Virus record (IMG/VR): IMGVR_UViG_3300023257_000007
Location: 186,001 to 250,000 of that record
Reading direction: 5' to 3' (one strand)
DNA length: 64,000 nt
Shown: positions 35,896 through 50,965 of the stretch, piece after piece
Layout of the letters: every line of letters starts with the position of its first letter
Position numbering within the stretch: the first letter of the stretch is position 1
Made by a program: the position numbers and the translations under genes
Notes under the pieces: generated by a model
Told to the model about the DNA's origin: nothing
Database searches by the model: none
What the model saw: the letters and a program-made list of their open reading frames with translations, nothing else

Positions 35896-36131
35896 TTAAG
35901 GAATATCATATATGTATTATAAATAAAAAGGAGAAAAAAATGCTAACAATATTAACAATATTATTAATATGGAATCAATTTAGTGGTTGGTTTAGAAAGA
36001 TGTTTTGTAAAATTGGTTTACACACATGGATTAAAGTCTATTCACATAATGAAAAAGGTTGGCATATAAAGGAAAAGAAATGTAGAATATGTAATAAGGA
36101 GGTAAAAAATGATAAAAATAATAGAAAATAA
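35892..36131 (+). CDS. Small membrane / Cys-His protein
   Basis: FCKIGLHTW...KCRICNK pattern. Confidence 0.65.
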   Translation: MIKEYHICIINKKEKKMLTILTILLIWNQFSGWFRKMFCKIGLHTWIKVYSHNEKGWHIKEKKCRICNKEVKNDKNNRK

Positions 36132-36618
36132 AACACAAACTAAAAGAATTGAACCTTATTATAGGTTAAAATTTAGTTACATGATTGGTGATGCTGATGG
36201 TGACACTACAGAGAAGATTGATATTCCTCTTAACAATCCATATGTCGAAAGAGTTGTTGATGTTTTAAATAATTGTGATACACCTAAAGGTCATTGGGGT
36301 ATGATATTAGACTCTGAACATTTCACTAAGTTATTGAATCAGGGTAAAATGACACAGAGTGATTATAATTTTTGTAAAGTGGTTGTATTTGGTGATGACA
36401 TTGATGAACACATGGAAGAGTTTTTCAGCAAGGAAAGAATTGAGGCTGACAAATTAAAATTATTGGAGATAACTGGCGATGAAAAATCATACGCTTATGA
36501 ATTTGAAGAGGCTTGTATTACTTCGATTGGACATAGTTTCGCAGTTTTTGAAGGTATTGATTTATATTATATTGATGAATATGGAGTAAAACATGAGACC
36601 AAAATAGTTGATGATTAA
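36109..36618 (+). CDS. GDAD/YYYD family protein without tag
   Basis: IGDADGD and LYYIDEYGVKHE shared with 31441 and 52330; TAAGGAGGT SD upstream. Confidence 0.8.
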   Translation: MIKIIENKTQTKRIEPYYRLKFSYMIGDADGDTTEKIDIPLNNPYVERVVDVLNNCDTPKGHWGMILDSEHFTKLLNQGKMTQSDYNFCKVVVFGDDIDEHMEEFFSKERIEADKLKLLEITGDEKSYAYEFEEACITSIGHSFAVFEGIDLYYIDEYGVKHETKIVDD

Positions 36619-36692
36619 AACATTAAAATGGTAAGGAATTTCAGAAGGAGTTCCTTATCTTTGTATTAATATTAATTTAAAGAAGAAATAAA

Positions 36693-36920
36693 ATGATAAA
36701 ATATAAAATAACAGATGAAAAAATTGAAGTAGGCGACATTGTTGCTTATGGAATAACATGGAGAGAGAAACGTGTAAGAAAGCACGGTTATGTACTTGGT
36801 GTTTGGGAAGAATATTGGGATGAGGATTCACAGAAGTTTAGAAATAAGGTTGAATGTGTTGATAAAGATAATCATATAATTCGTAGTGAAGAATGGTTAA
36901 AAAAGGTGGTATTGATATGA
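36693..36920 (+). CDS. Small SH3/KOW-like hypothetical protein
   Basis: EVGDIV...HGYVLGV pattern; own promoter. Confidence 0.65.
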   Translation: MIKYKITDEKIEVGDIVAYGITWREKRVRKHGYVLGVWEEYWDEDSQKFRNKVECVDKDNHIIRSEEWLKKVVLI

Positions 36921-37222
36921 TAAAACGATATTATAAAATAGGAATAGATATTCCTGATAATAAATTTGTTAAGTTGATATCAGATCATTTATATTCTTTG
37001 GGTTATAAATGGTGTAGTGATTTTAGAGACGAATCTTTTTATGATAAAGTAACGAATGAATGTATAAGAAGTAATGTGCGTGGTATTGGTGTTGAATGTA
37101 ATGGTCGCATGAGTTACAATGTTGTTAAAAATCAAACTGAAAAGTGGTATTCTCTTGAAGAATATGTAATAAAATATGATTTAGTGATTGAATATGAAGG
37201 ATTAAAAATGGGTTTATTATGA
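36917..37222 (+). CDS. KMGLL-tag protein, subfamily C
   Basis: HLYSLGYKW, GIGVE..GR.SYNV; ends YEGLKMGLL. Confidence 0.8.
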   Translation: MIKRYYKIGIDIPDNKFVKLISDHLYSLGYKWCSDFRDESFYDKVTNECIRSNVRGIGVECNGRMSYNVVKNQTEKWYSLEEYVIKYDLVIEYEGLKMGLL

Positions 37223-37335
37223 GAAAGAGAAAACGAATCAAGGAAAATATTGACTATTTGTTATTTGGAATGGATTGTGCATTGATAGTATTATTTGTAT
37301 TATTCATAGTATTAATTATAATTTAGGAGGAAAAA

Positions 37336-37686
37336 ATGAGAAAAATATATTTAGCAACAAATTATTTCACAGCGTTAACCCCGCTTGATGATGATAACAA
37401 TTTATTAAAATTAGAAAGAGGTAAAGATCCTGTTATTATTTGTACCCTTGAGAAATATCTGGAAGATGTTGATAACACAATAATCACAGGTAACATATTA
37501 AGATTAGAAATAATTGCAAAAACAGATGATGGTTGGATAATTGAACAAGAATTTATAACACCGGGAATGTTAGAGAGTTTGAATTGTAGAAAGATAAGTC
37601 TTGACTCACAATTTATTGAAACTTTAAATCGAAGCCAGAAAGTGGCTTTAGAGTTAAAGAATATAAATGAAAAATTGTCAAGGTAA
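37336..37686 (+). CDS. Hypothetical protein
   Basis: 116 aa, AGGAGG SD. Confidence 0.75.
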   Translation: MRKIYLATNYFTALTPLDDDNNLLKLERGKDPVIICTLEKYLEDVDNTIITGNILRLEIIAKTDDGWIIEQEFITPGMLESLNCRKISLDSQFIETLNRSQKVALELKNINEKLSR

Positions 37687-37854
37687 ATTTTTTTATTAAG
37701 TAGAATCACCGTATATTTGTATTATACAATTGAGAAGATAGAAAAAGAAGAGAAATAAACAGAATGATTTTTTAATTCAGAATAAAGTTCTTATCTTTGT
37801 ATAGACAAAAACAAGTAAACATAATATTAATTAATTTAAAAAACGAAAAACAAA

Positions 37855-38169
37855 ATGGCAAACAAAAAAGATTTAACAAACGCAATTGCAATAGCTACAG
37901 GCAAAACAAAAAAAGATAGCAAAGAATTAGTAAACGTCATAATGGCATCTATTAAATCTGAATTAAGTAACGGTGAAGGTTCTATCGTAAAATTAGTAAA
38001 CTTTGGAACATTTAAAGTAGTTAATCGAAAAGCAAGAAAAGGAAGAAATCCAAGGACTGGTGAATCAATTGATATCCCTGCAAAGAATGTAGTTAGATTC
38101 AAAGCTGGTAAAGGTCTTAAAGAAGCGGTTGATTATACTGCTGAAGAAAGAGAAGAATTAGGAATATAA
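37855..38169 (+). CDS. hup: HU family DNA-binding protein, copy 1
   Basis: NKKDL..AIA, L.NFGTF.V..RKARKGRNPRTGE.I.IPAK.VV.FK.GK.LKEAV; tail DYTAEEREELGI. Confidence 0.95.
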   Translation: MANKKDLTNAIAIATGKTKKDSKELVNVIMASIKSELSNGEGSIVKLVNFGTFKVVNRKARKGRNPRTGESIDIPAKNVVRFKAGKGLKEAVDYTAEEREELGI

Positions 38170-38192
38170 GAAATAAAACTCCTGAAATATCG

Positions 38193-38219
38193 AAGCCACC
38201 TGGAGAGGTGGCTTTTTTT
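38193..38219 (+). terminator. Intrinsic terminator
   Basis: AAGCCACCT-GGAG-AGGTGGCTT plus T tract. Confidence 0.9.
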
Positions 38220-38246
38220 ATTTGAAAAAATTCCTTATATTTGTAT

Positions 38247-38567
38247 ATGAATAACGAAAAATATATAAGGTTTAAGGTAAAAACTCTATCAGATAGTAAG
38301 AGTATTCAAGAATTTTTATTTTCTTTAGGATATATGTGGTGTTCAGAAAATAGGAAAGAATATTATTATATGAATTTTGAAACGTCTGATATTTTATTAT
38401 GTCTTGAGAGTGACTTTAATCCTAATATAGATCATATTTTTCATGGTGATGTAGAGATATTAAATTATGATAAAAGATGGATGGATAAGATAATAAAATC
38501 TTATGATATGAGTAATTATAAAGATTTTATTCAATATAAAAATGCAAAACAACTGGGATTAATTTAA
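38247..38567 (+). CDS. KMGLL-tag protein, subfamily D
   Basis: IQEFLFSLGY.W; ends KNAKQLGLI. Confidence 0.8.
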   Translation: MNNEKYIRFKVKTLSDSKSIQEFLFSLGYMWCSENRKEYYYMNFETSDILLCLESDFNPNIDHIFHGDVEILNYDKRWMDKIIKSYDMSNYKDFIQYKNAKQLGLI

Positions 38568-38597
38568 TATTAAGAACAAACTCCGTATCTTTACACT

Positions 38598-38903
38598 ATG
38601 AAAAAACATGAAAAATTTATATTATTTAAGGTTGATACTTCAAGGGAAAGTAAGGAAATTCAAGAATTTTTGTTTTCTTTAGGTTATTCTTGGCGTGGAG
38701 ATAATAATATGGAATATTTCTCTGTTGAAATTGGGGCTTATATTTTATTATGTGTTGATAGTAATAATATTAAGAGCAAAAATTGTATTTTTTATGGAAA
38801 TGATAAAATGCAATATGATCAAGAACTTATAAAATCTTATAACATGAATAATTATAAAGATTCTTTATGTTTTATAGAATCATTTAAATTGGGATTATTT
38901 TAA
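38598..38903 (+). CDS. KMGLL-tag protein, subfamily D
   Basis: Paralog of 38247; ends IESFKLGLF. Confidence 0.8.
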   Translation: MKKHEKFILFKVDTSRESKEIQEFLFSLGYSWRGDNNMEYFSVEIGAYILLCVDSNNIKSKNCIFYGNDKMQYDQELIKSYNMNNYKDSLCFIESFKLGLF

Positions 38904-38936
38904 AATTGAGAACAAACTCCGTATCTTTACATAGTT

Positions 38937-38991
38937 AAAGGGCGGAGAATTTTTATAGGTTCTGGGAGAGTAGACTCCAACTTGCGATATA
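38937..38991 (+). ncRNA. Five-copy small RNA candidate, copy A
   Basis: AAGGGCGGAG...GAGAGTAGACTCCAACTTGCGATATA directly after a TATCTTTA promoter; no ORF follows. Confidence 0.6.
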
Positions 38992-39042
38992 TTTTTTTTA
39001 ACACAATTTTTATTTCTTAGAAGTAATCCGTATCTTTGTTAT

Positions 39043-39474
39043 ATGAAAATGAAAGTATTATATATTAAAGCTGAAAACATGAAAGATGGTGATTTTGACA
39101 TTATGTTAAAATTTGTTAATAATAATAAAAATTTAGATTATTATTTAACAGGTATAAATATGGGGGGTATTATGAGAACATTTATATGTATAGCCGTAAA
39201 TGATGATAATTATAATGAGGTTAAAGAAAAATTATTCTCTAAATATAATACACCATCACATATTACTGATTTTCAAAATTATGAAGATTATAAATATCCC
39301 TATTTATCAATTGAAATATCAATGGAAAATGAACATGCAGATCATTTAACTATTCATCCTTTGAATGATGATGATGTAGATGTTAAAAATTTTGAAATAA
39401 TTTATAGTAATATTGATGACATATTTGATGATATTGATATGCATATAACTACAAAAAAACTTGGTTTATCTTAA
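39043..39474 (+). CDS. KMGLL-tag variant protein
   Basis: Ends ITTKKLGLS. Confidence 0.75.
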   Translation: MKMKVLYIKAENMKDGDFDIMLKFVNNNKNLDYYLTGINMGGIMRTFICIAVNDDNYNEVKEKLFSKYNTPSHITDFQNYEDYKYPYLSIEISMENEHADHLTIHPLNDDDVDVKNFEIIYSNIDDIFDDIDMHITTKKLGLS

Positions 39475-39489
39475 CTAAAAAAAATAATT

Positions 39490-39810
39490 ATGAGAAAATT
39501 TAATTGTATTAAAATAGAAAATGAAGAACATTTAAATGAATGTTATAAAAAGATAATTGATCTTAAAACACATTATCCATATAACACTTTTGTTGATAGA
39601 TTTATTATGATAAAGGGTTATTGTATTGGTTTTGAAATAGAAGAAATAGAAGAAGGAAGATTAATTTTAACATTTTTAACTGATAATGATCTTCAACGAT
39701 TTGATGAATCAAATGAATTAGCTTTTAATTGTAATTATTTTAATGATATTGATTCTTTTGTTGAATATCATAAGATTTATTTTGATTGTAGATCATTAGG
39801 GGTTTTATAA
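39490..39810 (+). CDS. KMGLL-tag variant protein
   Basis: Ends FDCRSLGVL. Confidence 0.75.
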   Translation: MRKFNCIKIENEEHLNECYKKIIDLKTHYPYNTFVDRFIMIKGYCIGFEIEEIEEGRLILTFLTDNDLQRFDESNELAFNCNYFNDIDSFVEYHKIYFDCRSLGVL

Positions 39811-39811
39811 G

Positions 39812-39842
39812 AAAGTTTAGAAGGTATTCCGTATCTTTGTAT
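39812..39842 (+). promoter_or_regulatory. 31-bp repeated promoter unit, copy 4
   Basis: Identical core to copy 3; drives the SprT-like gene. Confidence 0.85.
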
Positions 39843-39863
39843 AAATATTAAAATAATATAATT

Positions 39864-40325
39864 ATGGAATTAGATAAAGCAAGAATAAAAATGAGAGAAT
39901 TGTTATCAAAACATGGTCTTGATAATTGGAGTTTTGATTTTGATAGAGCAGTTAGACGTTTAGGTCAATGTGTTTGGAAAAAGAATAGTATCATGACTCG
40001 AAAAATTACTATGTCTAGAATTATGACTGAAAGTAGAACTGATAAAGAAGTTATTAATACAATGTTACATGAAATAGCACACGCAATAGATTTTGAAACA
40101 AGGGGTAGAAGTGCTCATGATGATGTTTGGAGATCAATTGCATTGAGTATTGGTTGTGATGGTAATAGATCTAGTAATGTTGATGTTGAGGTTTCAGAAA
40201 AGAATTATAAGTGGTTGGCTATATGTCCAGAGCATGGTGTTTTGGGTGGATGGCAAAGAAAACCAAAAGATAATAAAATGTGTAAAAAATGTAAAAGTAA
40301 AATCATAATAAAGGAAAATAAATAA
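39864..40325 (+). CDS. SprT-like zinc metallopeptidase
   Basis: RRLGQC, TMLHEIAHA (HExxH), H...W...A..IGC, C-terminal Cys cluster. Confidence 0.88.
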   Translation: MELDKARIKMRELLSKHGLDNWSFDFDRAVRRLGQCVWKKNSIMTRKITMSRIMTESRTDKEVINTMLHEIAHAIDFETRGRSAHDDVWRSIALSIGCDGNRSSNVDVEVSEKNYKWLAICPEHGVLGGWQRKPKDNKMCKKCKSKIIIKENK

Positions 40326-40326
40326 C

Positions 40327-41154
40327 ATGAAAATAAAAGAAATAATAAGAAAAATATATGATAAAACCGGACATGGATATACTGCTACGGCTATTAGTGT
40401 TTTAAAAAAATCTGGTTTGATGGGTGATAAAACACATCAAAAGATTAAGAACATTGTTGAGAATGAAATTCAAAGATATGAAAAAGAATATTTTGAAAAA
40501 TATAAGTCTTATATTAGTGAGTATAGATATGAATCACCAACTATGATTTTATCAATAATGTATATTGATGGTTTTAAAGGAAAATATACTGATTCTTATA
40601 AGAAGATTCAGAAAGAGATTCAAAGAATTGACACATCAGAATTAAAGTCATATAAATCTTTAATAAAGAAAGCTAAATCTACTGATCATTTGCTAAGTAA
40701 GATATCCCATTATAAAAGAGCATTATCATTTCGAGGGGATAAAAAAATTGAAGAGAAATTGAAAGATTTAGAGGAGGATTTTCACTCAGATCAGATTATA
40801 GAGGATGAGAAGCAATTTTCAGAGAATACTATTCAATTAAAAGATTCCTCTATAATCAAAATTTATCTTGATCCGAATAACAGAAATACTTTGATGATGG
40901 AACAAGAACAAGAAGGTAAAAAAGGTTTTAGGTTAGTTAATCATTTTGCAGCTATACCACCATTGAAAGAAACTACTGACATATTTTGGATTGGTGAAAG
41001 AACTTCAAAAGCAACTGGTTATAAACATAATTCAGAGGCTTTAATAATAATGAGAGATGAAAATGATACAATAAGAATATATTATAAAGGAAGTTTATTA
41101 ATAGAAAATTATTGTGAAGAAGAATTAAAAAAAATTATAAATAAAATTAAATAA
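40327..41154 (+). CDS. Hypothetical protein
   Basis: 275-aa ORF. Confidence 0.8.
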   Translation: MKIKEIIRKIYDKTGHGYTATAISVLKKSGLMGDKTHQKIKNIVENEIQRYEKEYFEKYKSYISEYRYESPTMILSIMYIDGFKGKYTDSYKKIQKEIQRIDTSELKSYKSLIKKAKSTDHLLSKISHYKRALSFRGDKKIEEKLKDLEEDFHSDQIIEDEKQFSENTIQLKDSSIIKIYLDPNNRNTLMMEQEQEGKKGFRLVNHFAAIPPLKETTDIFWIGERTSKATGYKHNSEALIIMRDENDTIRIYYKGSLLIENYCEEELKKIINKIK

Positions 41155-41162
41155 AACAAATT

Positions 41163-41369
41163 ATGTGGATAACAATTGGAATAATAATAGGATTAGTAAT
41201 AGGTGGTTGGTTAGGATATCAGGCTTGTATGGCAAAATATAGACCTACAGAATTACTTAAATTAGCAAAAATACAAACTGAAATGATTTCAGGTGAAATA
41301 ACACCGGAAAAGGCTTTAAAAGAGATACATCAAATTGAAATTGAACACCCTGAATTGAAAAAGAAATGA
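41163..41369 (+). CDS. Small membrane protein
   Basis: N-terminal TM helix with GxxxG. Confidence 0.7.
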   Translation: MWITIGIIIGLVIGGWLGYQACMAKYRPTELLKLAKIQTEMISGEITPEKALKEIHQIEIEHPELKKK

Positions 41370-41689
41370 AAAAGTATAAATTTATAACAGAAAGTGATTA
41401 TGGTGATTTGCAACTCATCATTTATTTTGAAGATAGAGATGAATCTATTAAAGTTCAAAATGAAATGATAGAACGTGGTTATTTAAAAATCACAGAGACA
41501 AATACACAAGATAAAGATTTATATCCATTTTCTGTTTGGTTTGAACCTAAAAATAAAATAATGAATGGTGGTCAAAAGAATTCTGAATATATGTTAAGGT
41601 ATGGTAGATCATTACATTCTGATATATTTATGGAGTATATAGATAATCTGGAAGCATTATTTGAGTCTTTAAAAATGGGTTTGTTATAA
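41366..41689 (+). CDS. KMGLL-tag family protein
   Basis: Ends FESLKMGLL. Confidence 0.8.
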   Translation: MKKYKFITESDYGDLQLIIYFEDRDESIKVQNEMIERGYLKITETNTQDKDLYPFSVWFEPKNKIMNGGQKNSEYMLRYGRSLHSDIFMEYIDNLEALFESLKMGLL

Positions 41690-41725
41690 TTTTTAACTTT
41701 TGAACAAAGTCCGTATATTTGTATT

Positions 41726-41809
41726 ATCATTAACGGTTACATGTGTCCAACGACACCTTGCAAGAGCGTAATAAGCGATGTCCAGTGTTCGATTCCCTGG
41801 TAGTGGTAC
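41726..41809 (+). tRNA. Degenerate tRNA-like element (pseudo-tRNA, possibly GCA anticodon)
   Basis: Own promoter; ATCATTA/TAGTGGT acceptor-like pairing; GTTCGATTC T-loop; poor D and anticodon stems. Confidence 0.35.
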
Positions 41810-41929
41810 AAAAATCACAAAGAAAACAAAACACAAGTATATTTTTTATTTAGGAAGGAAGTCCGTATATTTGTATAACAATAAAGAAAAATAATAATAT
41901 TAATTTAAAATCTATAGGAGGATATAAAA

Positions 41930-42166
41930 ATGGCAAGAGAAAAATTAGGTAAAGTAGTAGGACAAGTTGGTGGATTCAGAATCAGAATGGAAATGAAAAA
42001 TATCCAAAAAATTGAAACAGACAGATTTGGTAGAAGAAAAGTAACTGAATCTAAAAGATGTTTCACCGGAAAATACGGAGTTTACGCAGGTAGAAACCTT
42101 TGTAAAAATGGTCTAACCAAAGAAAAAGCAATTCAATACGCAAAATCGTATAACAAAGAAAATTAG
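41930..42166 (+). CDS. Small basic hypothetical protein
   Basis: Own promoter and AGGAGG SD. Confidence 0.8.
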   Translation: MAREKLGKVVGQVGGFRIRMEMKNIQKIETDRFGRRKVTESKRCFTGKYGVYAGRNLCKNGLTKEKAIQYAKSYNKEN

Positions 42167-42249
42167 AGCTCCCAGTTGGAGATTCGTTCCTCAAGGTTGA
42201 AAGGTCTTGAGGGACGTCTTAATTATAATAATAATTATTAAAAATATAT

Positions 42250-42322
42250 GTATCATTAGCTCAGTTGGTAGAGCTTCTGCCTTTTAAGCAGAAAGTCCAG
42301 GGTTCGAGTCCCCGATGGTATA
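42250..42322 (+). tRNA. tRNA-Lys(UUU)
   Basis: TAGCTCAGTTGGTAGAGC D arm; TCTGC-CTTTTAA-GCAGA; GGTTCGAGTCC. Confidence 0.9.
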
Positions 42323-42357
42323 CACAATGTAACCTCCTTTCACATTGAATTAGTACT

Positions 42358-42387
42358 TCCCCACCCGAACAGGTGGGGATTTTTTTT
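42358..42387 (+). terminator. Intrinsic terminator
   Basis: TCCCCACC/GGTGGGGA stem plus T tract. Confidence 0.85.
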
Positions 42388-42443
42388 ATTAGAAGGATTG
42401 TTGTATCTTTGTATTAGTATAAATTTTAAAAAAGGAGAAAAAA

Positions 42444-42599
42444 ATGAATGAATTAACAAAATTTATTGAATATTTAGAAAAAACTGATATTGAGGATTTT
42501 AAACATCCTGAACAGATTAAAGAATATATTATTGGTATATGTAAATCAATTAAAAAAGATATTATTGATTTTCATCCAATGATGGAGGATACGGAATAG
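42444..42599 (+). CDS. 51-aa microprotein (below the track cutoff)
   Basis: Promoter, AAGGAG, MNELTK...; leader duplicated at 42624-42678. Confidence 0.6.
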   Translation: MNELTKFIEYLEKTDIEDFKHPEQIKEYIIGICKSIKKDIIDFHPMMEDTE

Positions 42600-42665
42600 G
42601 GTTTTTTAAATCAGAACAAATTCCGTATCTTTGTATTAATATAAATTTTAAAAAAGGAGAAAAAA

Positions 42666-42767
42666 ATGAATGAATTAAACAAAATAGCAATAAATTTTAT
42701 AAATATTATAAACACAATTAGTATAGACGCATTTACATTATATATGTATATTGGGTTTTTCATATAG
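42666..42767 (+). CDS. 33-aa hydrophobic microprotein
   Basis: Same promoter/RBS/MNEL leader as 42444. Confidence 0.45.
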   Translation: MNELNKIAINFINIINTISIDAFTLYMYIGFFI

Positions 42768-42778
42768 GAGAAATTAAA

Positions 42779-43012
42779 ATGATAGTAAGTATAAGAATAA
42801 ATAACTGGGAAGATTATTTCAAAATTAAGAAATATCTAATATCACTCAATTTTAAGTGGTTTAGGACAACCTATAGCCCAAAATTTGATTTAATTATACA
42901 CTTATCAAGTGGTAAATTATCATATGATCCAAGAATGAATAAAAATGATAATTATGAATATGCTACTGTAAAAGAAATTATAAGTAAAGGATTCGGATCT
43001 TTTATTTTTTAG
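42779..43012 (+). CDS. Small protein with the family N-terminal fold but no tag
   Basis: IRINNWEDY..I..YLISLNFKW; ends GFGSFIF. Confidence 0.7.
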   Translation: MIVSIRINNWEDYFKIKKYLISLNFKWFRTTYSPKFDLIIHLSSGKLSYDPRMNKNDNYEYATVKEIISKGFGSFIF

Positions 43013-43035
43013 AAGATAATCCGTATATTTGTATT

Positions 43036-43611
43036 GACACAAGCAGAAACAGGATTGGTCGAATTGCCTGTGTTCTTCGGAACAAACTCGTTACCTATGC
43101 TTTTTTCCTAGAGGTTGGGCGAATTAATAACAATAAACTAGGCGCCGGACAATGCGATATTGTATGATTTTTAAGTAGTGAAATAAGAACTAACTTGGCT
43201 CTCTAACCAGATAGAGTGACTTTCGTAAGATGTTTGAAAGAAAACTATCTAGACTTTTATGTTTCAAGATAACCGGTAATGGAATTAAAAAGTTGCTAAC
43301 ACACAACGCGACAAGGCTTTGTCGCGTGAGATAGATATTCAAGGTAGGAGGTATTAGATACACCGTCTGGACTACAAGTTTGGAAATCAACAAAGTGGTG
43401 GGATGCGAGTGGTTGACCAGTGTTAGAATTAAAGAAGCAGGTTCGAATCCTGTGAATATGGATATAGAAAACAAAGGAGGGTTAATATTCGAGATAGAAT
43501 GGCTCTAGCTTCGGCAGAGTATCGCCTCAGAAATTAAATGAACGGCTATGCTAAATAGCTTCAGTACTTTAATCGAGAAGCCCAATAGGAAATTACTATT
43601 GGGCTTTTTTT
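43036..43611 (+). ncRNA. Large (~575 nt) structured non-coding RNA candidate
   Basis: Starts just after a TATATTTG promoter, ends at a strong terminator; GC-richer than flanks; C(UUCG)G hairpins, 9-bp ACGCGACAA/TTGTCGCGT stem, tRNA-like GCAGGTTCGAATCCTGT arm; no long plus-strand ORF. Confidence 0.7.
43578..43611 (+). terminator. Intrinsic terminator
   Basis: AAGCCCAATAG/CTATTGGGCTT 11-bp stem plus T tract. Confidence 0.9.
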
Positions 43612-43642
43612 ATTTGAATAATCTCCGTATATTTGTACTATC

Positions 43643-43696
43643 AAAAGGCGGAGTTTTAAAAGAACCCCGAAGAGTAGACTCCAATTTGCGTTATAT
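43643..43696 (+). ncRNA. Five-copy small RNA candidate, copy B
   Basis: AAAAGGCGGAG...GAAGAGTAGACTCCAATTTGCGTTATAT after a TATATTTG promoter. Confidence 0.6.
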
Positions 43697-43882
43697 ATTA
43701 TATAACATTTTTTAATTCAGAATATTATTAGTATCTTTGTATTATAAATATAAAATTAGAAATTATAATTACATATTTTTTCTCTTTGAAAAAATTGGGA
43801 GGAATTTTTAATTTAAGAAAAATTTCCGTATATTTGTAGTATTAAAATGTTTAGTATAAATTAAATAAAAAACTGAAAAAAT

Positions 43883-44527
43883 ATGGCAAAAGAAAAAAAG
43901 ATTGAAGAAAAAATAGTGGAAAAATTATTAACATCTAAGAAGAAATTAGAAACAGGCAAATGGCTTTATAGAGGATTTGTAGTTGAAAAAAATGGATCAA
44001 AATGGGTGGCTAAAGTTCACGAAGGTTCTAATATTGTTGAAGAAAAATCTGATTCTGTTGTTGATGAATTGATGACATCAGCTAAAAATATTTGTATTAG
44101 TATTGATAAGGTTTTAGGTGATTTAACAGATTCAGAAAAAACTAAACCGAAAAGAGCAATAAAATCAAAAGCATCAAGACTTAAAGATAAAGATGAAAAA
44201 GCTAAATATATTGAAAGAGCGCAAAGAGTAGCTTATGACATTAGAAATGGTTTACAAGTATTATCATTTCTTAATAAGAAAAAATTAAAAGATAATCTTT
44301 TAAGTGATGCTCCGAATATGAGAAAAACATTATCTAATGGTTATAGATTAGGATGGGAAAATGGTTGTTTATATAATGTACCAGAAATAACTGATGAAAT
44401 TAAAGCAATCATAGAAAAGGACAAAGAGTTTATTGAAGAATTAAAAGTGAAACATGAAGATTTAAACATATCATTTGGTATGGAAGATAATAAAATTGAT
44501 ATAGAAGTAACTTATAAAGAAAAATAA
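43883..44527 (+). CDS. Hypothetical protein
   Basis: 214 aa, own promoter and terminator. Confidence 0.8.
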   Translation: MAKEKKIEEKIVEKLLTSKKKLETGKWLYRGFVVEKNGSKWVAKVHEGSNIVEEKSDSVVDELMTSAKNICISIDKVLGDLTDSEKTKPKRAIKSKASRLKDKDEKAKYIERAQRVAYDIRNGLQVLSFLNKKKLKDNLLSDAPNMRKTLSNGYRLGWENGCLYNVPEITDEIKAIIEKDKEFIEELKVKHEDLNISFGMEDNKIDIEVTYKEK

Positions 44528-44545
44528 TCTCAATCTTTTTAATAT

Positions 44546-44575
44546 AAACCCCAGTTAATCGACTGGGGTTTTTTT
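44546..44575 (+). terminator. Intrinsic terminator
   Basis: AAACCCCAGT/ACTGGGGTTT plus T tract. Confidence 0.9.
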
Positions 44576-44634
44576 ATTTTAAATACTTTCCGTATATTTG
44601 TATAACGAAATTAATAATTAAAAAGGAGGAAAAA

Positions 44635-44997
44635 ATGACAACATTATTATTTATAAAAATATTAATAATTATAATGATTTTAGTAATGGGATTTATATCA
44701 GTTAGAATATGGGTTAAGCAAGTTAAATTGTTTAATAAGAGAAATAAAATGATTGCTGATAAAAAATTAAAAACTGAAAACTATATCAAAGAAAGAACTG
44801 AATTCTTTAAGAAAAATATTGATGAGTTTGAAATAGATGAAGTCGTTAAAGAAAAAGCATTTAACTTTGAAGCAATTATATTAGATAAAACAGCAAACAG
44901 TCTTTTTGTTCACACAAAGAAAAGAAAACCAGAAGGAACTGATTGTACAGGATGGTTTTCTATTGATGATTTCAACAGAAGATTTAAAAAACAATAA
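44635..44997 (+). CDS. Membrane-anchored hypothetical protein
   Basis: N-terminal TM; AGGAGG SD. Confidence 0.8.
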   Translation: MTTLLFIKILIIIMILVMGFISVRIWVKQVKLFNKRNKMIADKKLKTENYIKERTEFFKKNIDEFEIDEVVKEKAFNFEAIILDKTANSLFVHTKKRKPEGTDCTGWFSIDDFNRRFKKQ

Positions 44998-45080
44998 TAA
45001 TAATTAAAATTAAAACTAGAAACTATGAAAAATTATGAAATTGAAGATGATAGAGTAATGTTCTAAAAACATTGAAACAT

Positions 45081-45152
45081 GGTCCGTTCGTCTATTGCGA
45101 AGGACGTTGGGTTTTCAGCCCAGAAAGAGGGGTTCGATTCCCCTACGGACTA
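45081..45152 (+). tRNA. tRNA-Glu(UUC)
   Basis: GGTCCGT/ACGGACT acceptor; TTGGG-TTTTCAG-CCCAG; GGTTCGATTCC. Confidence 0.9.
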
Positions 45153-45159
45153 CTAAATT

Positions 45160-45243
45160 GGGTAGGTATGCAAGAGGCTAAAGCAGGCGGTCTGTAAAAC
45201 CGTTACGTAAGATCTACCGGTGGTTCAAATCCATCTCTACCCA
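45160..45243 (+). tRNA. tRNA-Tyr(GUA)
   Basis: GGGTAGG/TCTACCC; GCGGT-CTGTAAA-ACCGT; long variable arm. Confidence 0.9.
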
Positions 45244-45250
45244 CACATAT

Positions 45251-45326
45251 CTAGATGTTCCTCCAGCCAGGCATAGGGGCGTGACTTGGACTCACGTGTT
45301 CACAGGTTCGAATCCTGTCATTTAGA
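45251..45326 (+). tRNA. tRNA-Pro(UGG)
   Basis: C1-G72 and A73; CGTGA-CTTGGAC-TCACG; ACAGG-TTCGAAT-CCTGT; atypical D arm and A37. Confidence 0.8.
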
Positions 45327-45335
45327 CTAAAATAT

Positions 45336-45409
45336 TGTGATGTAGCTCAGCTAGGTAGAGCACCAGATTGAAGATCTGGGTGTCGGTGGTTCAAATCCAT
45401 CTATCACAA
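45336..45409 (+). tRNA. tRNA-Phe(GAA)
   Basis: CCAGA-TTGAAGA-TCTGG; standard D and T arms. Confidence 0.9.
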
Positions 45410-45415
45410 CAAAAT

Positions 45416-45490
45416 GCCTTTATGATGTAAAGGATAGCATAAAAGTTTTCTAAACTTTTCGTCTAGGTTCGAATCCTAGTAAGGGTACCA
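45416..45490 (+). tRNA. tRNA-Arg(UCU), CCA encoded
   Basis: AAAGT-TTTCTAA-ACTTT; CTAGG-TTCGAAT-CCTAG; ends ACCA. Confidence 0.9.
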
Positions 45491-45599
45491 ATATCAAAAT
45501 AAATTACAAATTATTGAATACTATTTTTAGTTTAAGAAAAATATTCGTATATTTGTATTATAATTAAATTAAAAATTAAACTAATAGGAGGAAAATAAA

Positions 45600-45752
45600 A
45601 TGGCAATTAAAAGATGTACTTGTAAAAATGAATTTCAAGATGAGAAATATGGTAAAGGAAAAAGAGTATTTACTCAATCTAGCGTACCTAAAGAAGGTGG
45701 AACCGCAAAAGAAGGTAAATCAAGATGTACTGTATGTGGATCAACAAAATAA
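45600..45752 (+). CDS. 50-aa zinc-ribbon microprotein (below the track cutoff)
   Basis: MAIKRCTCKNEFQD..YGKGKRV...RCTVCGSTK; own promoter and AGGAGG SD. Confidence 0.75.
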   Translation: MAIKRCTCKNEFQDEKYGKGKRVFTQSSVPKEGGTAKEGKSRCTVCGSTK

Positions 45753-45844
45753 TACGAATTATTTTTTATTTAAGTATAAAGTTCGTATGTATAACAATTA
45801 AACAATTAAATTATTTATTAATAACACTAAAACAAAAAATTAAA

Positions 45845-46159
45845 ATGGCAAACAAAAAAGACTTAACAAACGCAATCGCTTTAGCAACAGGTAAAACTAA
45901 AAAATCAAGTAAAGACCTAGTTGATGTTATCATGGCATCTATTAAAGCTGAATTATCAAATGGTGAAGGTTCAATCGTGAAATTAGTTAATTTCGGAACA
46001 TTCAAAGTAGTAAACAGAAAAGCAAGAAAAGGTAGAAACCCTAGAACTGGTGAATCAATCAACATACCTTCAAAAAATGTTGTTAGATTTAAAGCTGGTA
46101 AAGCATTGAAAGAAGCAGTTGATTATACTGCCGAAGAAAGAGAAGAATTAGGACTATAA
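45845..46159 (+). CDS. hup: HU family DNA-binding protein, copy 2
   Basis: Near-identical to 37855; true start MANKK at 45845; tail EEREELGL. Confidence 0.95.
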   Translation: MANKKDLTNAIALATGKTKKSSKDLVDVIMASIKAELSNGEGSIVKLVNFGTFKVVNRKARKGRNPRTGESINIPSKNVVRFKAGKALKEAVDYTAEEREELGL

Positions 46160-46176
46160 TCTACTCAAACATAAAG

Positions 46177-46208
46177 AAAACCCTGACTTTGACGGTCAGG
46201 GTTTTTTT
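46177..46208 (+). terminator. Intrinsic terminator
   Basis: AAAACCCTGAC/GTCAGGGTTTT. Confidence 0.9.
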
Positions 46209-46251
46209 ATGTAGAATAATTTTCGTATCTTTGTATTAAGTAAAATTAATT

Positions 46252-46626
46252 ATGAACCTATTTAAAATAAAAATTATGGGAAAAAAAGAAAAAAAACAAA
46301 TAGGCTTTAAACAAAATTATCAAATTGAAGCTGACAAATTAAAAGAAGAACCAAAAGAAGAAGAAAATATAAATAAAGAAGAAGAAAAAGGTCAAGCTGC
46401 ACTTGAAGCAATGGCTAAACTTACCGGACAATTTCAAATGTCTACAAATGAAATATTAATATCAACAAAATTAAAAATGTATGTAGATTTAATTAAATCA
46501 GAAGAATTCATAATAAAAACATTAGAAGAAAAAGAAGCATTTATAGGTGAATTGTTATTTTTACAATCATTAAGCACAGAAATGACCACATTAAAATCAC
46601 AAATGCAATCAGTTATAAACAAATAA
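46252..46626 (+). CDS. Hypothetical protein
   Basis: 124 aa (start may be 46276), own promoter. Confidence 0.75.
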   Translation: MNLFKIKIMGKKEKKQIGFKQNYQIEADKLKEEPKEEENINKEEEKGQAALEAMAKLTGQFQMSTNEILISTKLKMYVDLIKSEEFIIKTLEEKEAFIGELLFLQSLSTEMTTLKSQMQSVINK

Positions 46627-46639
46627 AAAAGGGAAAATT

Positions 46640-46849
46640 ATGTTATCAAAAGAAGAATTTAAATCGCTAGAAGAAACAAAATTACTTGCGTCTAATGTTA
46701 AAAAAATGTTAAATGATGATTGCGAATTATTTATCAAATACACAAACGAACCAACAGGTAAAATTAAACAATTATTGAAAAGAACTAAAGATCCTTATTT
46801 AGAGTTTATTTTAAATAATGTTTTACAAACAAGATATGGAAAGAAGTAA
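46640..46849 (+). CDS. Hypothetical protein
   Basis: 69-aa ORF. Confidence 0.7.
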   Translation: MLSKEEFKSLEETKLLASNVKKMLNDDCELFIKYTNEPTGKIKQLLKRTKDPYLEFILNNVLQTRYGKK

Positions 46850-46917
46850 TTTTTTTTATCTTTTGAAGAATATCCGTATATTTGTATATTGTTAAACTAA
46901 AAAAGGAGGAAATTAAT

Positions 46918-47184
46918 ATGGCACGTAAAATAAATTGGAATAAAAATAAAGCTAAATCAGAAATTAAAAAAAATGTAGAAATTGTATCTGAAAAGAAAAC
47001 TATTAAATTTGCTTATAAAATTGGATTAATCAAACGAAAAGGTGGTATAACATCTTATAACGCAATTGATAAAGACGCAATGGAAACCAAAGTATTGGAA
47101 ATAATGGAAAAAGATAATTATAAGAAAATCCTAGTTTTAAACAATAAAACCAGAGAACGTAAAGTATATTTATCAGAATTATAA
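46918..47184 (+). CDS. Basic hypothetical protein
   Basis: Start MARKINW at 46918 after AGGAGG. Confidence 0.75.
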   Translation: MARKINWNKNKAKSEIKKNVEIVSEKKTIKFAYKIGLIKRKGGITSYNAIDKDAMETKVLEIMEKDNYKKILVLNNKTRERKVYLSEL

Positions 47185-47282
47185 TTATAATATAATTTTT
47201 TACCTGGAATATTATCCGTATATTTATATCAACAAACAACAATTAAATTATTTATTAACTAACATTAAAACAAAAAATTAAA

Positions 47283-47495
47283 ATGCCAAACATCAAAAAA
47301 TGTAAAATAGGAGAATTTGTACAAATCATCACTAATGGACAAGCGAACCGTAGAGGTCGTATAGTATCTAAAACAGAGAAACGAGTTTATTGTTTCATCA
47401 TGGAAGGTGGAAAATATTTACGTGACGAGAATGGTCGTGAAAAACGTTTTTTAGTTAACCCTACAAACATTAAGTTTTACAACTCAGCAGAGTAA
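47283..47495 (+). CDS. Small KOW/SH3-like basic protein
   Basis: KIGEFVQII..G....RGRIV; followed by terminator. Confidence 0.7.
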   Translation: MPNIKKCKIGEFVQIITNGQANRRGRIVSKTEKRVYCFIMEGGKYLRDENGREKRFLVNPTNIKFYNSAE

Positions 47496-47505
47496 AAGAA
47501 AAAAG

Positions 47506-47533
47506 AGAACCTCCATTTAATTGGAGGTTCTTT
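47506..47533 (+). terminator. Intrinsic terminator / hairpin
   Basis: GAACCTCCA/TGGAGGTTC stem. Confidence 0.7.
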
Positions 47534-47537
47534 ACAT

Positions 47538-47608
47538 TGACCCATGGTATAATGGTAGTATACCTGCCTTTGAAGTAGGTGGTTTTGGTTCGAATCCTGA
47601 TAGGTCAA
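47538..47608 (+). tRNA. tRNA-Gln(UUG)
   Basis: CCTGC-CTTTGAA-GTAGG; U1-A72; weak T stem. Confidence 0.8.
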
Positions 47609-47997
47609 CAATTATTAACTTTAAAAAATTTAAAATATGGATATTTGTATAATAATAATATCACTTTTATTTATATTATGTAACGTTTTTGTTTTAGGAT
47701 ATTATTTTGAAAGAAATAAATCTAAAAAGGTGTCTTATTACAAATGTTTTATTGAGTGTTTAGAATTGTTTAAATATTTTTAACCCGAAAAACCATAGTT
47801 CGTTTTTTATACACCTAATTAATAACATGAAACAAAATGTGGGTACAAACCTTATATAATAAAAGATATGGGTGGTTATGATAAAGACTTTGTTGAAAAA
47901 GAATTTGAAAACTTTAAAAATATTTTTTAATTAAGAAACAAAATCGTATATTTGTTCTATAATAGAAAATGAAAGATATAAGAATCCAAAAATATAT

Positions 47998-48069
47998 TGC
48001 GAGGTGGAGCAGGGGTAGCTCGCTAGGCTCATAACCTAGAGGCCGTCGGTTCAAATCCGACTCTCGCTA
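47998..48069 (+). tRNA. tRNA-Met(CAU), initiator-like
   Basis: GTGGAGCAG..GGTAGCTCG..GGCTCATAACC; 1-72 mismatch; only two consecutive G-C pairs at the bottom of the anticodon stem. Confidence 0.85.
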
Positions 48070-48128
48070 CTAAGTAGGTCTATATGGCTTACCGAATATG
48101 TCTCTTAACACTACGGTGTTCAAAAGGA

Positions 48129-48151
48129 AAAGCCCGATAAGGGCTTTTTTT
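48129..48151 (+). terminator. Intrinsic terminator
   Basis: AAAGCCC-GATAA-GGGCTTT plus T tract. Confidence 0.85.
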
Positions 48152-48204
48152 ATTGGAATATATTCCGTATATTTGTATAGTTAAAATAAAAAGTAAAAAG
48201 TATT

Positions 48205-49188
48205 ATGGAAAGAAAATTAGCAACAATAGCAAAAATTAATGACATCAACCCTATTAAAGGAGCTGATGTAATTGAAGTAGCTACTATTCGAGGATGGAAA
48301 GTTGTAGTTAAAAAAGATGAATTCAAAATTGGAGATCTTTGTGTGTATTGTGAAATAGACTCAGTTATGCCTCCAAAAGAAGAATTTAAATTCCTAGAAA
48401 ATAAAAAATATAGGATTAAAACTATTAAACTCAGAGGACAAGTATCTCAAGGTATAGCATTTCCATTGTCTATTTTACCATTAGGTTGGCACTCAATTAT
48501 AGATCAAGATGTAACAGAACTTCTTGAAGTAATTAAATGGGAACCAGTAATACCAGCTTGTTTAGCAGGTAAAATAAAAGGTCTTTTTCCTTCTCATTCT
48601 CTAAAAACAGATGAAGAAAGAATACAAAATCTTATTGAAGAATTTCCTAATTTAAAAACTAAAACATATATAGCAACAGAAAAACTTGATGGTTCTTCTG
48701 CAACATTTTATCTTAAAGATAATATATTTGGTGTATGTTCTAGAAACTTAGATATATTAGAAGATGATACTAATTCATTTTGGAAAGTAGCAAGAGAATT
48801 GAAAATCGAAGAATTAATGAGAGAAAATGGTCTTGATAATTATAACCTCCAAGGAGAACTTATTGGAGAAGGTATACAAAAAAACAAATATAAAATCAAA
48901 GGACAAACAGTAAGATTCTTTAGAATGTTTAATATTAAAACACATTCATTTATAAATTATAGTGACTTTATTTTATTAATTAAAGCAATGGAATTACAAA
49001 CTGTTCCTATTGTAGAAGTTAATTTAGAACTACCTGAAACAATAGATGAACTTCTTAAATATGCTGAAGGATTATCAAAACTTAATAAAAATATACAAAG
49101 AGAAGGTATTGTCTTTGTAGCTGAAGAAACAGAAGATAGAGAATCATTTAAAGTAATATCAAATAAATTTTTATTGAAAAATGAATAA
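48205..49188 (+). CDS. RNA ligase, Rnl2/DRB0094 family with N-terminal OB domain
   Basis: ERKLATI..I..I.PI.GAD.IE, EKLDGSS motif I, QGELIG.GIQ.N.Y, REGIVF, SFKVISN.FLLK. Confidence 0.93.
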   Translation: MERKLATIAKINDINPIKGADVIEVATIRGWKVVVKKDEFKIGDLCVYCEIDSVMPPKEEFKFLENKKYRIKTIKLRGQVSQGIAFPLSILPLGWHSIIDQDVTELLEVIKWEPVIPACLAGKIKGLFPSHSLKTDEERIQNLIEEFPNLKTKTYIATEKLDGSSATFYLKDNIFGVCSRNLDILEDDTNSFWKVARELKIEELMRENGLDNYNLQGELIGEGIQKNKYKIKGQTVRFFRMFNIKTHSFINYSDFILLIKAMELQTVPIVEVNLELPETIDELLKYAEGLSKLNKNIQREGIVFVAEETEDRESFKVISNKFLLKNE

Positions 49189-49375
49189 AGAACTAGAATT
49201 AACAGGAAAACAAGTAAAACTCATATCAATGGATGACCCTTATACTAAATTGAAAAATGGAGATAAAGGTATAATAATCTTTGTCGATGATATAGGTCAA
49301 ATACATGTACAATGGGACAATGGATCATCACTTGCATTAATACCAGGTGAAGATAAGTATGAAATATTAGATTGA
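49181..49375 (+). CDS. DUF4314-like protein
   Basis: V.L..MDDPY..L..GDKG....VDDIGQIHV.WDNGSSLALIPGED. Confidence 0.85.
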   Translation: MNKELELTGKQVKLISMDDPYTKLKNGDKGIIIFVDDIGQIHVQWDNGSSLALIPGEDKYEILD

Positions 49376-49521
49376 TGGAACTTCCAGAAATGGGCGCTAT
49401 TTCGAGCATAAGATGTGAATTGCCCTGATATCTCTGCAGACAAACCCCTATAAGGGGAGAGAAAATTAGCATTCTTCCATCATTTTTAATCTTTGAATAA
49501 TTTCCATATCTTTACATAAGT

Positions 49522-49574
49522 AAAGGGCGGGAATTTTTTAGGTTCTGGAAGAGTAGACTCTAATTTATGATATA
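49522..49574 (+). ncRNA. Five-copy small RNA candidate, copy C
   Basis: AAAGGGCGGGAA...GGAAGAGTAGACTCTAATTTATGATATA after a TATCTTTA promoter. Confidence 0.55.
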
Positions 49575-49640
49575 TTCACCCCAATTTTTTATATTCAATA
49601 ATTATCCGTATATTTATACAAAATTAAAAAACCTAAAGAA

Positions 49641-49827
49641 ATGAAAAAAAAAATATTTAACACAAAAATTAGAAGAATTAACAACTCGGACTTATAAATA
49701 TAAAAGGACTAAACTTGATGTAATTATGTTTAAACTTAAAGAAGCATTAAGTAATGATGAATTGGCAGATCTATTAGAAATCAGATTAGTAGATATTTTA
49801 GAAGGACAGAAATTGGGTCTATTGTAA
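49641..49827 (+). pseudogene. KMGLL-tag gene frameshifted in an A10 run
   Basis: Removing one A gives MKKKYLTQKL...ILEGQKLGLL; may be a sequencing error. Confidence 0.65.
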
Positions 49828-49884
49828 TTTTTAATTCTTGAAAGATATCCTTATCTTTGTATAAACAATTAAAGATAAAATATC

Positions 49885-50076
49885 ATGGCAAAAAGAAAAA
49901 GAAAAAGAACAAAAAAAATCAAAGAATTTAAAATAACTTTAGATGACTTTCTAAAAGCTAATCGTATAGGATCTAGAGAGGCAGAATTAGAACAAAATGG
50001 AACTGGTTGGAAATCTAATCGAAAAGCATATAAAAATAAAAAATCATATTCACGCAAAGATAAACACAGAAATTAA
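49885..50076 (+). CDS. Small basic protein, ArfA-like ribosome rescue factor candidate
   Basis: ITLDDFLKANR..SRE.E; C-terminal KNKKSYSRKDKH resembles ArfA KNKKGKGSY.RKGKH. Confidence 0.5.
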   Translation: MAKRKRKRTKKIKEFKITLDDFLKANRIGSREAELEQNGTGWKSNRKAYKNKKSYSRKDKHRN

Positions 50077-50278
50077 TGGAATTCAATCAATTATCATATC
50101 AAATAATAGTTACGATGAATTAATGGAAGAACTTAAAGGTTTTATTGATTTTAAAGAAAATGATAGTTTACGACCGAATATCGTGACTATAAACAAGATT
50201 TTAAAGCAACATGGGATCATTATGAAGTTTATAAACGTAAAGTTATATGGGATAGTAATGATTATATATTTAATATGA
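50076..50278 (+). other. Short hypothetical ORF region, start uncertain
   Basis: 3' part of track ORF 49997..50278; its 5' part overlaps 49885..50076. Confidence 0.3.
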
Positions 50279-50345
50279 ATGAACAGTCTATTAAAGAAAT
50301 AATTAATAAAATTAAAGAAATAATACCATATAAATTAAAACTATT

Positions 50346-50672
50346 ATGATTAAACTATTAGCAATAAAAATATATTCTAAAACAAGATTATTACAAATAT
50401 TAGATGATCTTAAAAAGAACTATAATATACATAAAACATACAATAATGATTGGGTAGGTTTTAAAGGTATAAGAGAAGGTGGTATATTTGTATATATCAA
50501 TATTGAATCAAATATAAAGTTATATGGTTGGGATTATATTTACAAAGATTATGATAAGGAATATGTACCAAGTACTATCAGCAATGGTTTAAAACACAAA
50601 ACATTAATAATAATAGATAACGATTTACCAATATCAGCAATAATAGAATCAAATAAATTTAACTTAATATAA
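50346..50672 (+). CDS. KMGLL-tag variant, subfamily F
   Basis: WVGF..I..GG.FVY like 62663; ends IESNKFNLI. Confidence 0.8.
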   Translation: MIKLLAIKIYSKTRLLQILDDLKKNYNIHKTYNNDWVGFKGIREGGIFVYINIESNIKLYGWDYIYKDYDKEYVPSTISNGLKHKTLIIIDNDLPISAIIESNKFNLI

Positions 50673-50685
50673 AAAAGGAGACAAA

Positions 50686-50964
50686 ATGATTGAAACTAAA
50701 ACAAAAGAATTAGTAATAAATAAAACAACTATTAAGAAATCATTAATAATTCATGAATGTAAAAGATGTGGAAATACACACCTAATACATATTGAATATG
50801 AGATTGAAAACATAGATACATCTTGGGAAGAAGAAATGATTGCATTCTCTGATGGTTATTGGTGTGAAAAATGTAATCATGTTATAAGTGAAGATGAAAA
50901 TCATACTTCCACTTATGTTATTACTTCATCTACAAATGATGATTTTGATATAAGAAAAATATAA
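50686..50964 (+). CDS. Zinc-finger hypothetical protein
   Basis: CKRCG ... CEKCN. Confidence 0.75.
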   Translation: MIETKTKELVINKTTIKKSLIIHECKRCGNTHLIHIEYEIENIDTSWEEEMIAFSDGYWCEKCNHVISEDENHTSTYVITSSTNDDFDIRKI

Positions 50965-50965
50965 T

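Follow-up and report, generated by a model that had tools for sequence, protein, structure and literature searches.

An uncatalogued phage RNA module within an inferred non-coding unit of a giant phage

The locus lies within a 64,000-nucleotide stretch of IMG/VR virus record IMGVR_UViG_3300023257_000007 (positions 186,001 to 250,000), hereafter the window, and is an ORF-free interval, GC-richer than its flanks, at 43036-43611 (+) among nine tRNA genes. The following features are recognized, with promoter, terminator and transcript all inferred from sequence alone:

42999..43042 (+), promoter-like repeat of 44 nt with the core CCGTATATTTGT at 43021-43032, containing a Bacteroidota-type -7 box, TAnnTTTG, at 43024-43031; the inferred transcription start is about 43036-43040.
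43036..43611 (+), inferred non-coding transcription unit of ~575 nt.
43036..43295 (+), lineage-specific 5' region, including the hairpin cluster 43042-43102 (AAGCA...TGCTT enclosing ACAGG/CCTGT and GTTC-TTCG-GAAC).
43296..43426 (+), conserved 131-nt module, comprising P1 (43296-43302 with 43420-43426), P1a (CAAC 43304-43307 with GTTG 43412-43415), an ACCA bulge (43416-43419), the 5' loop strand (43308-43322), the P2 domain (43323-43397) and the 3' loop strand (43398-43411).
43306..43327 (+), strain-specific 9-bp hairpin that would sequester the conserved 5' loop strand.
43323..43397 (+), expanded P2 domain, with P2a (C43323-G43397, G43324-U43396 and C43325-G43395) and the inner motifs UGAG, G-UAGGAG, hairpin 43350-43364, CGUCUG-G-ACUA and CAACAAA.
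43427..43574 (+), lineage-specific 3' region, with hairpins at 43503-43519 and about 43547-43561.
43437..43453 (+), T-arm-like hairpin GCAGG-TTCGAAT-CCTGT with no tRNA around it.
43575..43611 (+), intrinsic terminator-like hairpin plus T-run.
43190..43474 (-), spurious antisense ORF of 94 aa.

A sequence-only reading had described this interval as a ~575-nt structured non-coding RNA with its own promoter and terminator, and every sequence feature it listed is present, so that the observation is confirmed. The GC content is 0.34-0.42 across 43000-43600, against 0.15-0.25 in the flanks, and no + strand ORF exceeds 42 aa, all three frames being full of stops. The core CCGTATATTTGT is one of 21 copies in the window, against 0.37 expected, 20 of which are on the + strand. 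Copies of the repeat lie 40-57 nt upstream of ORF starts (43826->43883, 44590->44635 and 48165->48205) and of tRNA-Met (47944->47998), making it a credible phage promoter, although this function is inferred. A 14-pair hairpin with a T-run at 43575-43609 is terminator-like, and the next promoter motif starts at 43625. The hairpins read by eye are also in the sequence, namely AAGCA/TGCTT at 43042-43102, ACGCGACAA-GGCT-TTGTCGCGT at 43306-43327, CTCTAGC(TTCG)GCAGAG at 43503-43519 and GCTAT/ATAGC, as are GAGTGGTTGA at 43408-43417 and the T-arm-like hairpin, for which no coordinates had been given. However, the unit as a whole folds only marginally better than shuffled sequence (z -1.58), and its 5' 260 nt and 3' 148 nt fold no better (z +0.37 and -0.64), with only the central 140 nt standing out (z -1.97).

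Identical sequence occurs on two IMG/VR contigs of 348 and 344 kb, and a search for relatives through the neighbouring 214-aa protein returned only the same two contigs. Window proteins include a baseplate wedge-like protein, a thymidylate synthase and an RNA ligase, the last lying in the tRNA-gene region downstream of the unit; the window therefore comes from an uncultivated jumbo phage. The DNA sequencing runs containing the sequence came from salt-lake and marine metagenomes and no RNA-seq run was listed, so the transcript itself is inferred.

The interpretation offered by the sequence-only reading, a ROOL/GOLLD-like or new large RNA with a tRNA-elbow mimic, is only partly supported. A non-coding, structured-RNA locus in a phage tRNA region, with a plausible promoter and terminator, is supported, and the antisense ORF is not a gene. 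A ROOL/GOLLD-like identity is not supported. The Rfam comparison that had been proposed as a check was run against Rfam 15, where only the tRNAs of the window matched at gathering score, and with thresholds relaxed to E<=10 nothing credible appeared on 42900-43750 or on 43280-43480, with ROOL, GOLLD, YrlA, RNase P and tmRNA all failing to match. Searches at gathering and E-value thresholds on the window, the module alone and 14 related loci gave only tRNAs and tmRNA, while ARAGORN finds nine tRNAs and no tmRNA in the window. The search can find distant phage YrlA RNAs, as it detected a YrlA-like RNA at 36.6 bits (below the family's gathering score of 69) beside the Ro gene of mycobacteriophage Sparky.

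A single ~575-nt ornate fold is likewise not supported, as only 43296-43426 has homologues. A BLAST search of the whole unit against INPHARED gave nothing at 1e-5, and at E<=10 only the 3' block of the module matched. Comparison of the flanks with those of other family members found only T-arm matches, and in a 15-mer scan of IMG/VR with the 5' hairpin loop the 70 other hits were all chance. Among related strains the 5' region is nearly invariant, with one SNP at 43114, whereas the 3' region is the most variable part, with 7 SNPs and a 6-nt insertion after 43457. The T-arm-like hairpin lies outside the conserved module, is absent from other family members, and is identical over 16 nt to the T-arm of the window's own tRNA-Pro. 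A search of JGI metagenomes for the module followed by such a T-arm returned only this phage plus one chance hit in coding DNA.

The element read as D-loop-like, GAGTGGTTGA, is not a D-loop. In the family it resolves into the last bases of the conserved 3' loop strand (GCGNGUG), a helix strand (GUUG) that covaries with CAAC, and the first base of a bulge (ACCA) that is found only in one subfamily. Readings of the 3' block as a tRNA D-loop, an acceptor ACCA end or UGG/CCA were rejected because Arthrobacter phage Atuin and many IMG/VR members replace GUUGACCA with other helix strands and lack ACCA. An elbow mimic built from this element and the T-arm is therefore not supported.

What is conserved is the central module, which belongs to a widespread phage RNA family that is absent from Rfam. 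A 16-mer from the supposed D-loop hit unrelated viral contigs that shared two blocks, ACAACGGACAAGGCU and GGUGGGNNGCGAGUGGUUGACCA, enclosed by a stem of different sequence in each contig. Gapped pattern scans of IMG/VR found 17 copies with 10-40 nt between the blocks, 35 with 40-70 nt and 48 with 70-100 nt, and a scan with the 5' block alone, which returned at least 120 rows, added many members with different helix sequences. In total, at least 157 module-bearing loci were collected. Among cultured phages, 77 Streptomyces phage records (Karimac and relatives) and Arthrobacter phages Atuin and Mimi carry the module, always in unannotated gaps of tRNA-rich regions. In Karimac it lies at 92,904-92,983 of MH590599.1. 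In contrast, a pattern scan of one genome for each of 185,579 prokaryotic species gave 11 hits, of which eight are true members, all on MAG or single-cell contigs, and the element is therefore essentially phage-borne.

Alignment of the family indicates a rod-like RNA in which a closing helix (P1), free in sequence but maintained by compensatory change, and a variable P2 domain flank a near-invariant 14x14-nt internal loop (5' GGACAAGGCUNNGG / 3' RUGGGNNGCGNGUG). On 19 sequences, 17 proposed pairs are standard in 91.9% of pair cells against 62.8% after shuffling, with 100 double-change cells against 30, and partners slid by 1-3 columns give 29-46%. On 86 model-aligned sequences the values are 93.0% against 54.7%, 556 double-change cells against 162, and 28-48% for slid partners, although this alignment was fitted to the model, which inflates the percentage paired. 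The four pairs next to the loop, invariant CAAC/GUUG in the first set, covary in the wider set as CGAC/GUCG, AGAC/GUCU, GAAC/GUUC, GGAC/GUCC, AAAC/GUUU and GUGAC/GUCAC, and as CAC/GUG in Atuin. G-U pairs outnumber A-C 18 to 6 in P1 and the module is co-oriented with neighbouring tRNAs; the structure is therefore read on this strand as RNA. Twenty-three of the 28 loop nucleotides hardly vary, and the few variable positions show no informative covariation, leaving the fold of the loop undefined. P2 ranges from a 4-bp UUCG hairpin to domains of about 185 nt (12-185 nt overall), short members of the L028 type having a UUCG-capped P2, and the family tolerates insertions of up to 249 nt, in the family locus L240.

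The family covariance model (R1) finds one copy in the window, 43292-43431, at 61 bits and E 7e-15. Its closing helices, CTAACAC/GTGTTAG and CAAC/GTTG, conform to the compensatory pattern of the family, and it aligns with a long-P2 subfamily sharing the inner motifs UGAG, G-UAGGAG, a small hairpin, CGU(U/C)UG-N-ACUA and CAACA; the P2 motifs of the window copy are shared with 15 long-P2 members and with Atuin. Its 3' loop strand is exact (43398-43411), while the 5' strand has an extra C at 43309 and U for G at 43322, which together create the perfect 9-bp hairpin at 43306-43327. Contigs of related strains from the same lakes lack this C and carry G43322, which restores the family consensus and breaks the hairpin. 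Other strain differences keep the P2 pairs (A43341G and G43343A) or perfect the inner hairpin (A43353G and T43359A), and the 3' half of the module is unchanged. The hairpin noted in the sequence-only reading is therefore real but strain-specific, and this copy may be a switched-off or regulated allele.

In 39 of 69 non-redundant loci a same-strand tRNA lies within 30 nt, the upstream tRNA typically ending 0-5 nt before P1 and the next starting 2-13 nt after it, such that the module fills a tRNA-sized slot. In one locus (L047) the upstream tRNA ends at its discriminator with no encoded CCA. The window copy does not occupy such a slot, lying 972 nt from tRNA-Lys and 1654 nt from tRNA-Glu, and this placement is typical of the family but not universal: 23 of the 69 loci have no tRNA in the retrieved locus, and other copies stand alone with a long P1 of 12-15 bp. 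As the window copy also has its own putative promoter and terminator, the RNA is not merely a cis-acting aid for neighbouring tRNAs. All-against-all clustering and a Pfam scan of 150 neighbour clusters gave no dominant protein family. HAD_PNKP, RNA ligase, PolyA_pol and vWA proteins appear only sporadically, and RNA-repair genes (PNKP phosphatase, RNA ligase and a CCA-adding-type nucleotidyltransferase) occur nearby in some loci, as expected in tRNA regions. A PDB sequence search with neighbour proteins of two loci, L019 and L028, was uninformative.

We favour, with moderate confidence, a model in which the unit is a non-coding transcription unit of a ~345-kb phage from salt-lake metagenomes whose functional core is the module. 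In this view, the RNA is cut out of the tRNA precursor in most phages by the tRNA end-processing enzymes of the host (RNase Z or RNase E at its 5' end, RNase P at its 3' side) and accumulates as a stable, trans-acting small RNA, with the invariant loop as its working surface. The loop is the same in phages of Actinomycetota, Bacteroidota-type and cyanobacterial hosts and no protein gene travels with it, so its partner would most likely be a universally conserved host component of tRNA or translation metabolism, unless the loop is itself a catalytic or ligand-binding fold. In this phage the module would have left the tRNA array to be embedded in lineage-specific flanks, including a T-arm copied from a tRNA, that probably serve only as precursor or stabilizing context. 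The absence of coding capacity, the family membership, the covarying helices, the breadth and the tRNA-array placement rest on the analysis itself, whereas expression, transcript ends, stability, processing, any catalysis or binding and the identity of a partner are inferred throughout the family, the partner purely so. Furthermore, 30 of 69 loci have no same-strand tRNA within 30 nt, so that processing by tRNA enzymes cannot be the general route.

Other explanations appear less likely. The possibility that the whole ~575 nt folds as one large ornate RNA of the ROOL/GOLLD type, with the module as its best-preserved domain, is consistent with the uniformly raised GC, the single promoter and terminator, the near-invariant 5' region and the tolerance of the family for large insertions. 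It is nevertheless unlikely, given the failure of the ROOL and GOLLD models, flanks without homologues anywhere searched and without above-chance folding, a 3' region that is the most variable part, and the fact that every other family member ends at P1, often abutting tRNAs. A decayed piece of a tRNA array, in which the T-arm and the 5' hairpin cluster are relics without a role, is somewhat less improbable in view of the tRNA-Pro identity, the surrounding tRNA genes and the lack of homology and folding signal in the flanks, but no flank segment has a tRNA-like score even at E<=10, the 5' region is conserved among strains, and the GC content remains well above the intergenic level. A protein-coding role for the antisense ORF or a small + strand ORF is effectively refuted: the antisense ORF has no Pfam match and would be frameshifted by the 1-nt deletion at 43309 in sister strains, the + frames are full of stops, and the conserved part is kept by base-pair covariation and lies between tRNA genes in other phages.

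A new self-cleaving ribozyme, or a cis-acting processing element that helps mature the neighbouring tRNAs as proposed for theta (HDV-like) ribozymes (10.1101/2023.06.13.544163), is also unlikely. It would account for modules starting 0-5 nt after tRNA 3' ends and for invariant loop nucleotides between variable helices, as in small ribozymes. On the other hand, the topology is incompatible with the HDV-like nested double pseudoknot, no Rfam ribozyme model matches, and many loci, including that of the window, lack an adjacent tRNA. Least probable among the RNA-based alternatives is a Y-RNA-like partner of phage Ro60 or Ro-like (TROVE/DUF2828 plus vWA) proteins. In L019 a DUF2828+DUF7788 protein, whose homologues are annotated as Ro-like RNA-binding proteins, starts about 120 nt downstream on the same strand, and Karimac carries a true Ro60 (gp130, TROVE + vWA_Ro60) about 10 kb upstream in the same tRNA region, with no detectable YrlA beside it, as well as a vWA-TerF-like gene following the module. 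However, only 1 of 157 module loci (mean 9 kb) encodes a Ro-like protein, and no TROVE domain was found among the 20 window ORFs scanned.

Phage tRNA arrays are usually read as codon-usage or counter-defence cargo. This work shows that a tRNA-sized non-tRNA passenger rides in them in phages of Actinomycetota, Bacteroidota-type and marine or freshwater hosts. Such conservation without a linked protein gene usually marks an RNA that is catalytic or that binds a universal cellular target, and because cultured carriers exist (Karimac and relatives, and Atuin) the question is directly testable at the bench. A more speculative possibility, which we consider tentative, is that the loop is a new functional RNA fold carried by phages of many bacterial phyla, either a new small ribozyme or an RNA binding a universal target such as the tRNA or translation machinery, or a metabolite or signal; tRNA arrays would then be delivery vehicles for an RNA effector and not just for tRNAs. 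The novelty is that of an RNA family, smaller than the object first proposed but far more widespread. No description was found in Rfam 15, in GenBank annotation or in the literature searched by sequence string and by topic, although the family may sit unnamed in large catalogues of phage structured RNAs such as PMC10690425, which could not be queried by sequence. The general idea of orphan structured RNAs in phage tRNA regions is already known.

The closest known systems are other non-tRNA passengers of phage tRNA regions, and the module fails the testable defining features of each. The large ornate RNAs GOLLD (RF01998, ~800 nt) and ROOL (RF03087, ~580 nt) are phage or prophage non-coding RNAs of unknown function often found beside or within tRNA arrays (PMC12286853 and its ref. 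29), but the conserved part here is 75-250 nt and rod-like with one invariant internal loop, not a 600-800-nt multi-domain RNA supported by covariation over its length. YrlA and other bacterial and phage Y RNAs (RF02553) are small stable RNAs in phage tRNA regions with a closing stem formed by the 5' and 3' ends, and some carriers also encode Ro60. The module has neither their T-arm nor their D-arm, GAGUGGUUGA being loop strand plus covarying helix; the Ro-binding motif GNCGAAN0-1G (PMC4201824) is absent on reading the alignments; and 156 of 157 loci show no link to Ro genes, which for YrlA lie within ~4 kb on the same strand. Theta (minimal HDV-like) ribozymes sit within a few nucleotides of tRNA 3' ends in Caudoviricetes (10.1101/2023.06.13.544163), but the helices shown here by covariation are simply nested, with P1 enclosing P2, and a 14-nt strand cannot hold P3, L3 and the P1 3' strand, so that the double pseudoknot (P1, P1.1, P2, P3, with or without P4) does not fit. 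Double T-loop modules that dock the tRNA elbow (RNase P J11/12-J12/13, T-box stem I and the L1 stalk) also have conserved purine-rich loop strands between helices, and UGGGA and AGCGA in many members resemble the UGNNA and AGNNA signature (PMC3664808). This reading was rejected because the required A is missing in members with UGGGUG (12 of 116) and the two pentamers overlap. Finally, the module occupies the slots of tRNAs and is tRNA-sized in its short form, and the window unit contains a canonical T-arm, but neither ARAGORN nor the Rfam tRNA and tmRNA models call it, there is no cloverleaf, and the T-arm lies outside the module.

The promoter-like repeat preceding the non-coding unit belongs to a dense series of similar elements within the window, which also contains a sequence duplication and an RNA ligase gene:
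35341-51652, almost all copies on the + strand, a 44-nt promoter-like repeat (for example at 41689-41732, 43603-43646 and 43804-43847)
42377-42461 and 42599-42683, an 85-nt direct repeat
43625-43825, two further promoter-like copies and sequence without an ORF
48205-49188, an RNA ligase gene

The 44-nt repeat, which is T-rich and continues with ..GAA.. and then TCCGTAT(A/C)TTTGTAT, recurs at least 21 times, with each copy located in front of a small ORF, a tRNA or an RNA unit, an arrangement that looks like a dense array of short early-type transcription units. Directly after the terminator of the non-coding unit there are two more promoter-like copies (43625 and about 43729), and between them lie about 200 nt with no ORF and a GC-rich hairpin around 43649-43669, which may represent another short non-coding transcript. 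The 85-nt direct repeat (85% identity) duplicates a promoter copy together with the start of two small paralogous ORFs (MNELTKF... and MNELNKI...). In all four metagenome runs, contig depth at 42647-42693 is several-fold to more than 20-fold higher than nearby, so this piece is repeated or shared among phages.

Two metagenome contigs join across the non-coding unit. One (window 43070-43601, metagenome run X6) replaces 43071-43600 with 34 other bases that include ACTCGTTACC, a sequence that also occurs at about 43088, while the other (window 43076-43322, metagenome run X9) skips 43077-43321. As the matched sides are only 25-31 nt, these joins may be assembly artefacts or may derive from relatives lacking most of the unit.

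The conserved module also varies in copy number and size in other genomes. One 201-kb viral contig with at least 26 tRNA genes (locus L072) carries two copies of the module with different P2 domains, at 381-547 and 8218-8302 (-). A Prochlorococcus single-cell assembly (locus L240) holds a 249-nt member at 4792-5040 with a very large P2 insertion, presumably from an infecting cyanophage.

Genes for RNA-related enzymes recur in the neighbourhood of the module in some loci. In the window, the RNA ligase (PHA02142 OB-fold plus RNA_ligase domain) sits among nine tRNA genes located at 42250-51050, and the same ligase type occurs near the module in one other locus, which suggests a tRNA-repair setting. 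Furthermore, a polynucleotide-kinase-type phosphatase domain protein (HAD_PNKP) recurs 0.5-1.1 kb upstream of the module in seven marine-type phage loci (L019, L034, L041, L082, L113, L117 and L135), while in three module-bearing loci (L028, L034 and L041) the module is followed by a protein of ~700 aa with a weak CobT-type vWA match.

Two phages offer a comparison with the Ro60 and YrlA systems. Streptomyces phage Karimac encodes a true Ro60 (gene 130; TROVE plus Ro60 vWA; 30912-32540 of the Karimac sequence L346) inside its tRNA region, but no YrlA-like RNA is detectable within about 2 kb of this gene at E<=0.1. In Mycobacterium phage Sparky (sequence L347), a YrlA-like match at 5617-5681 (36.6 bits, below the gathering score of 69) lies in an unannotated 300-nt gap between a tRNA cluster and the Ro gene.
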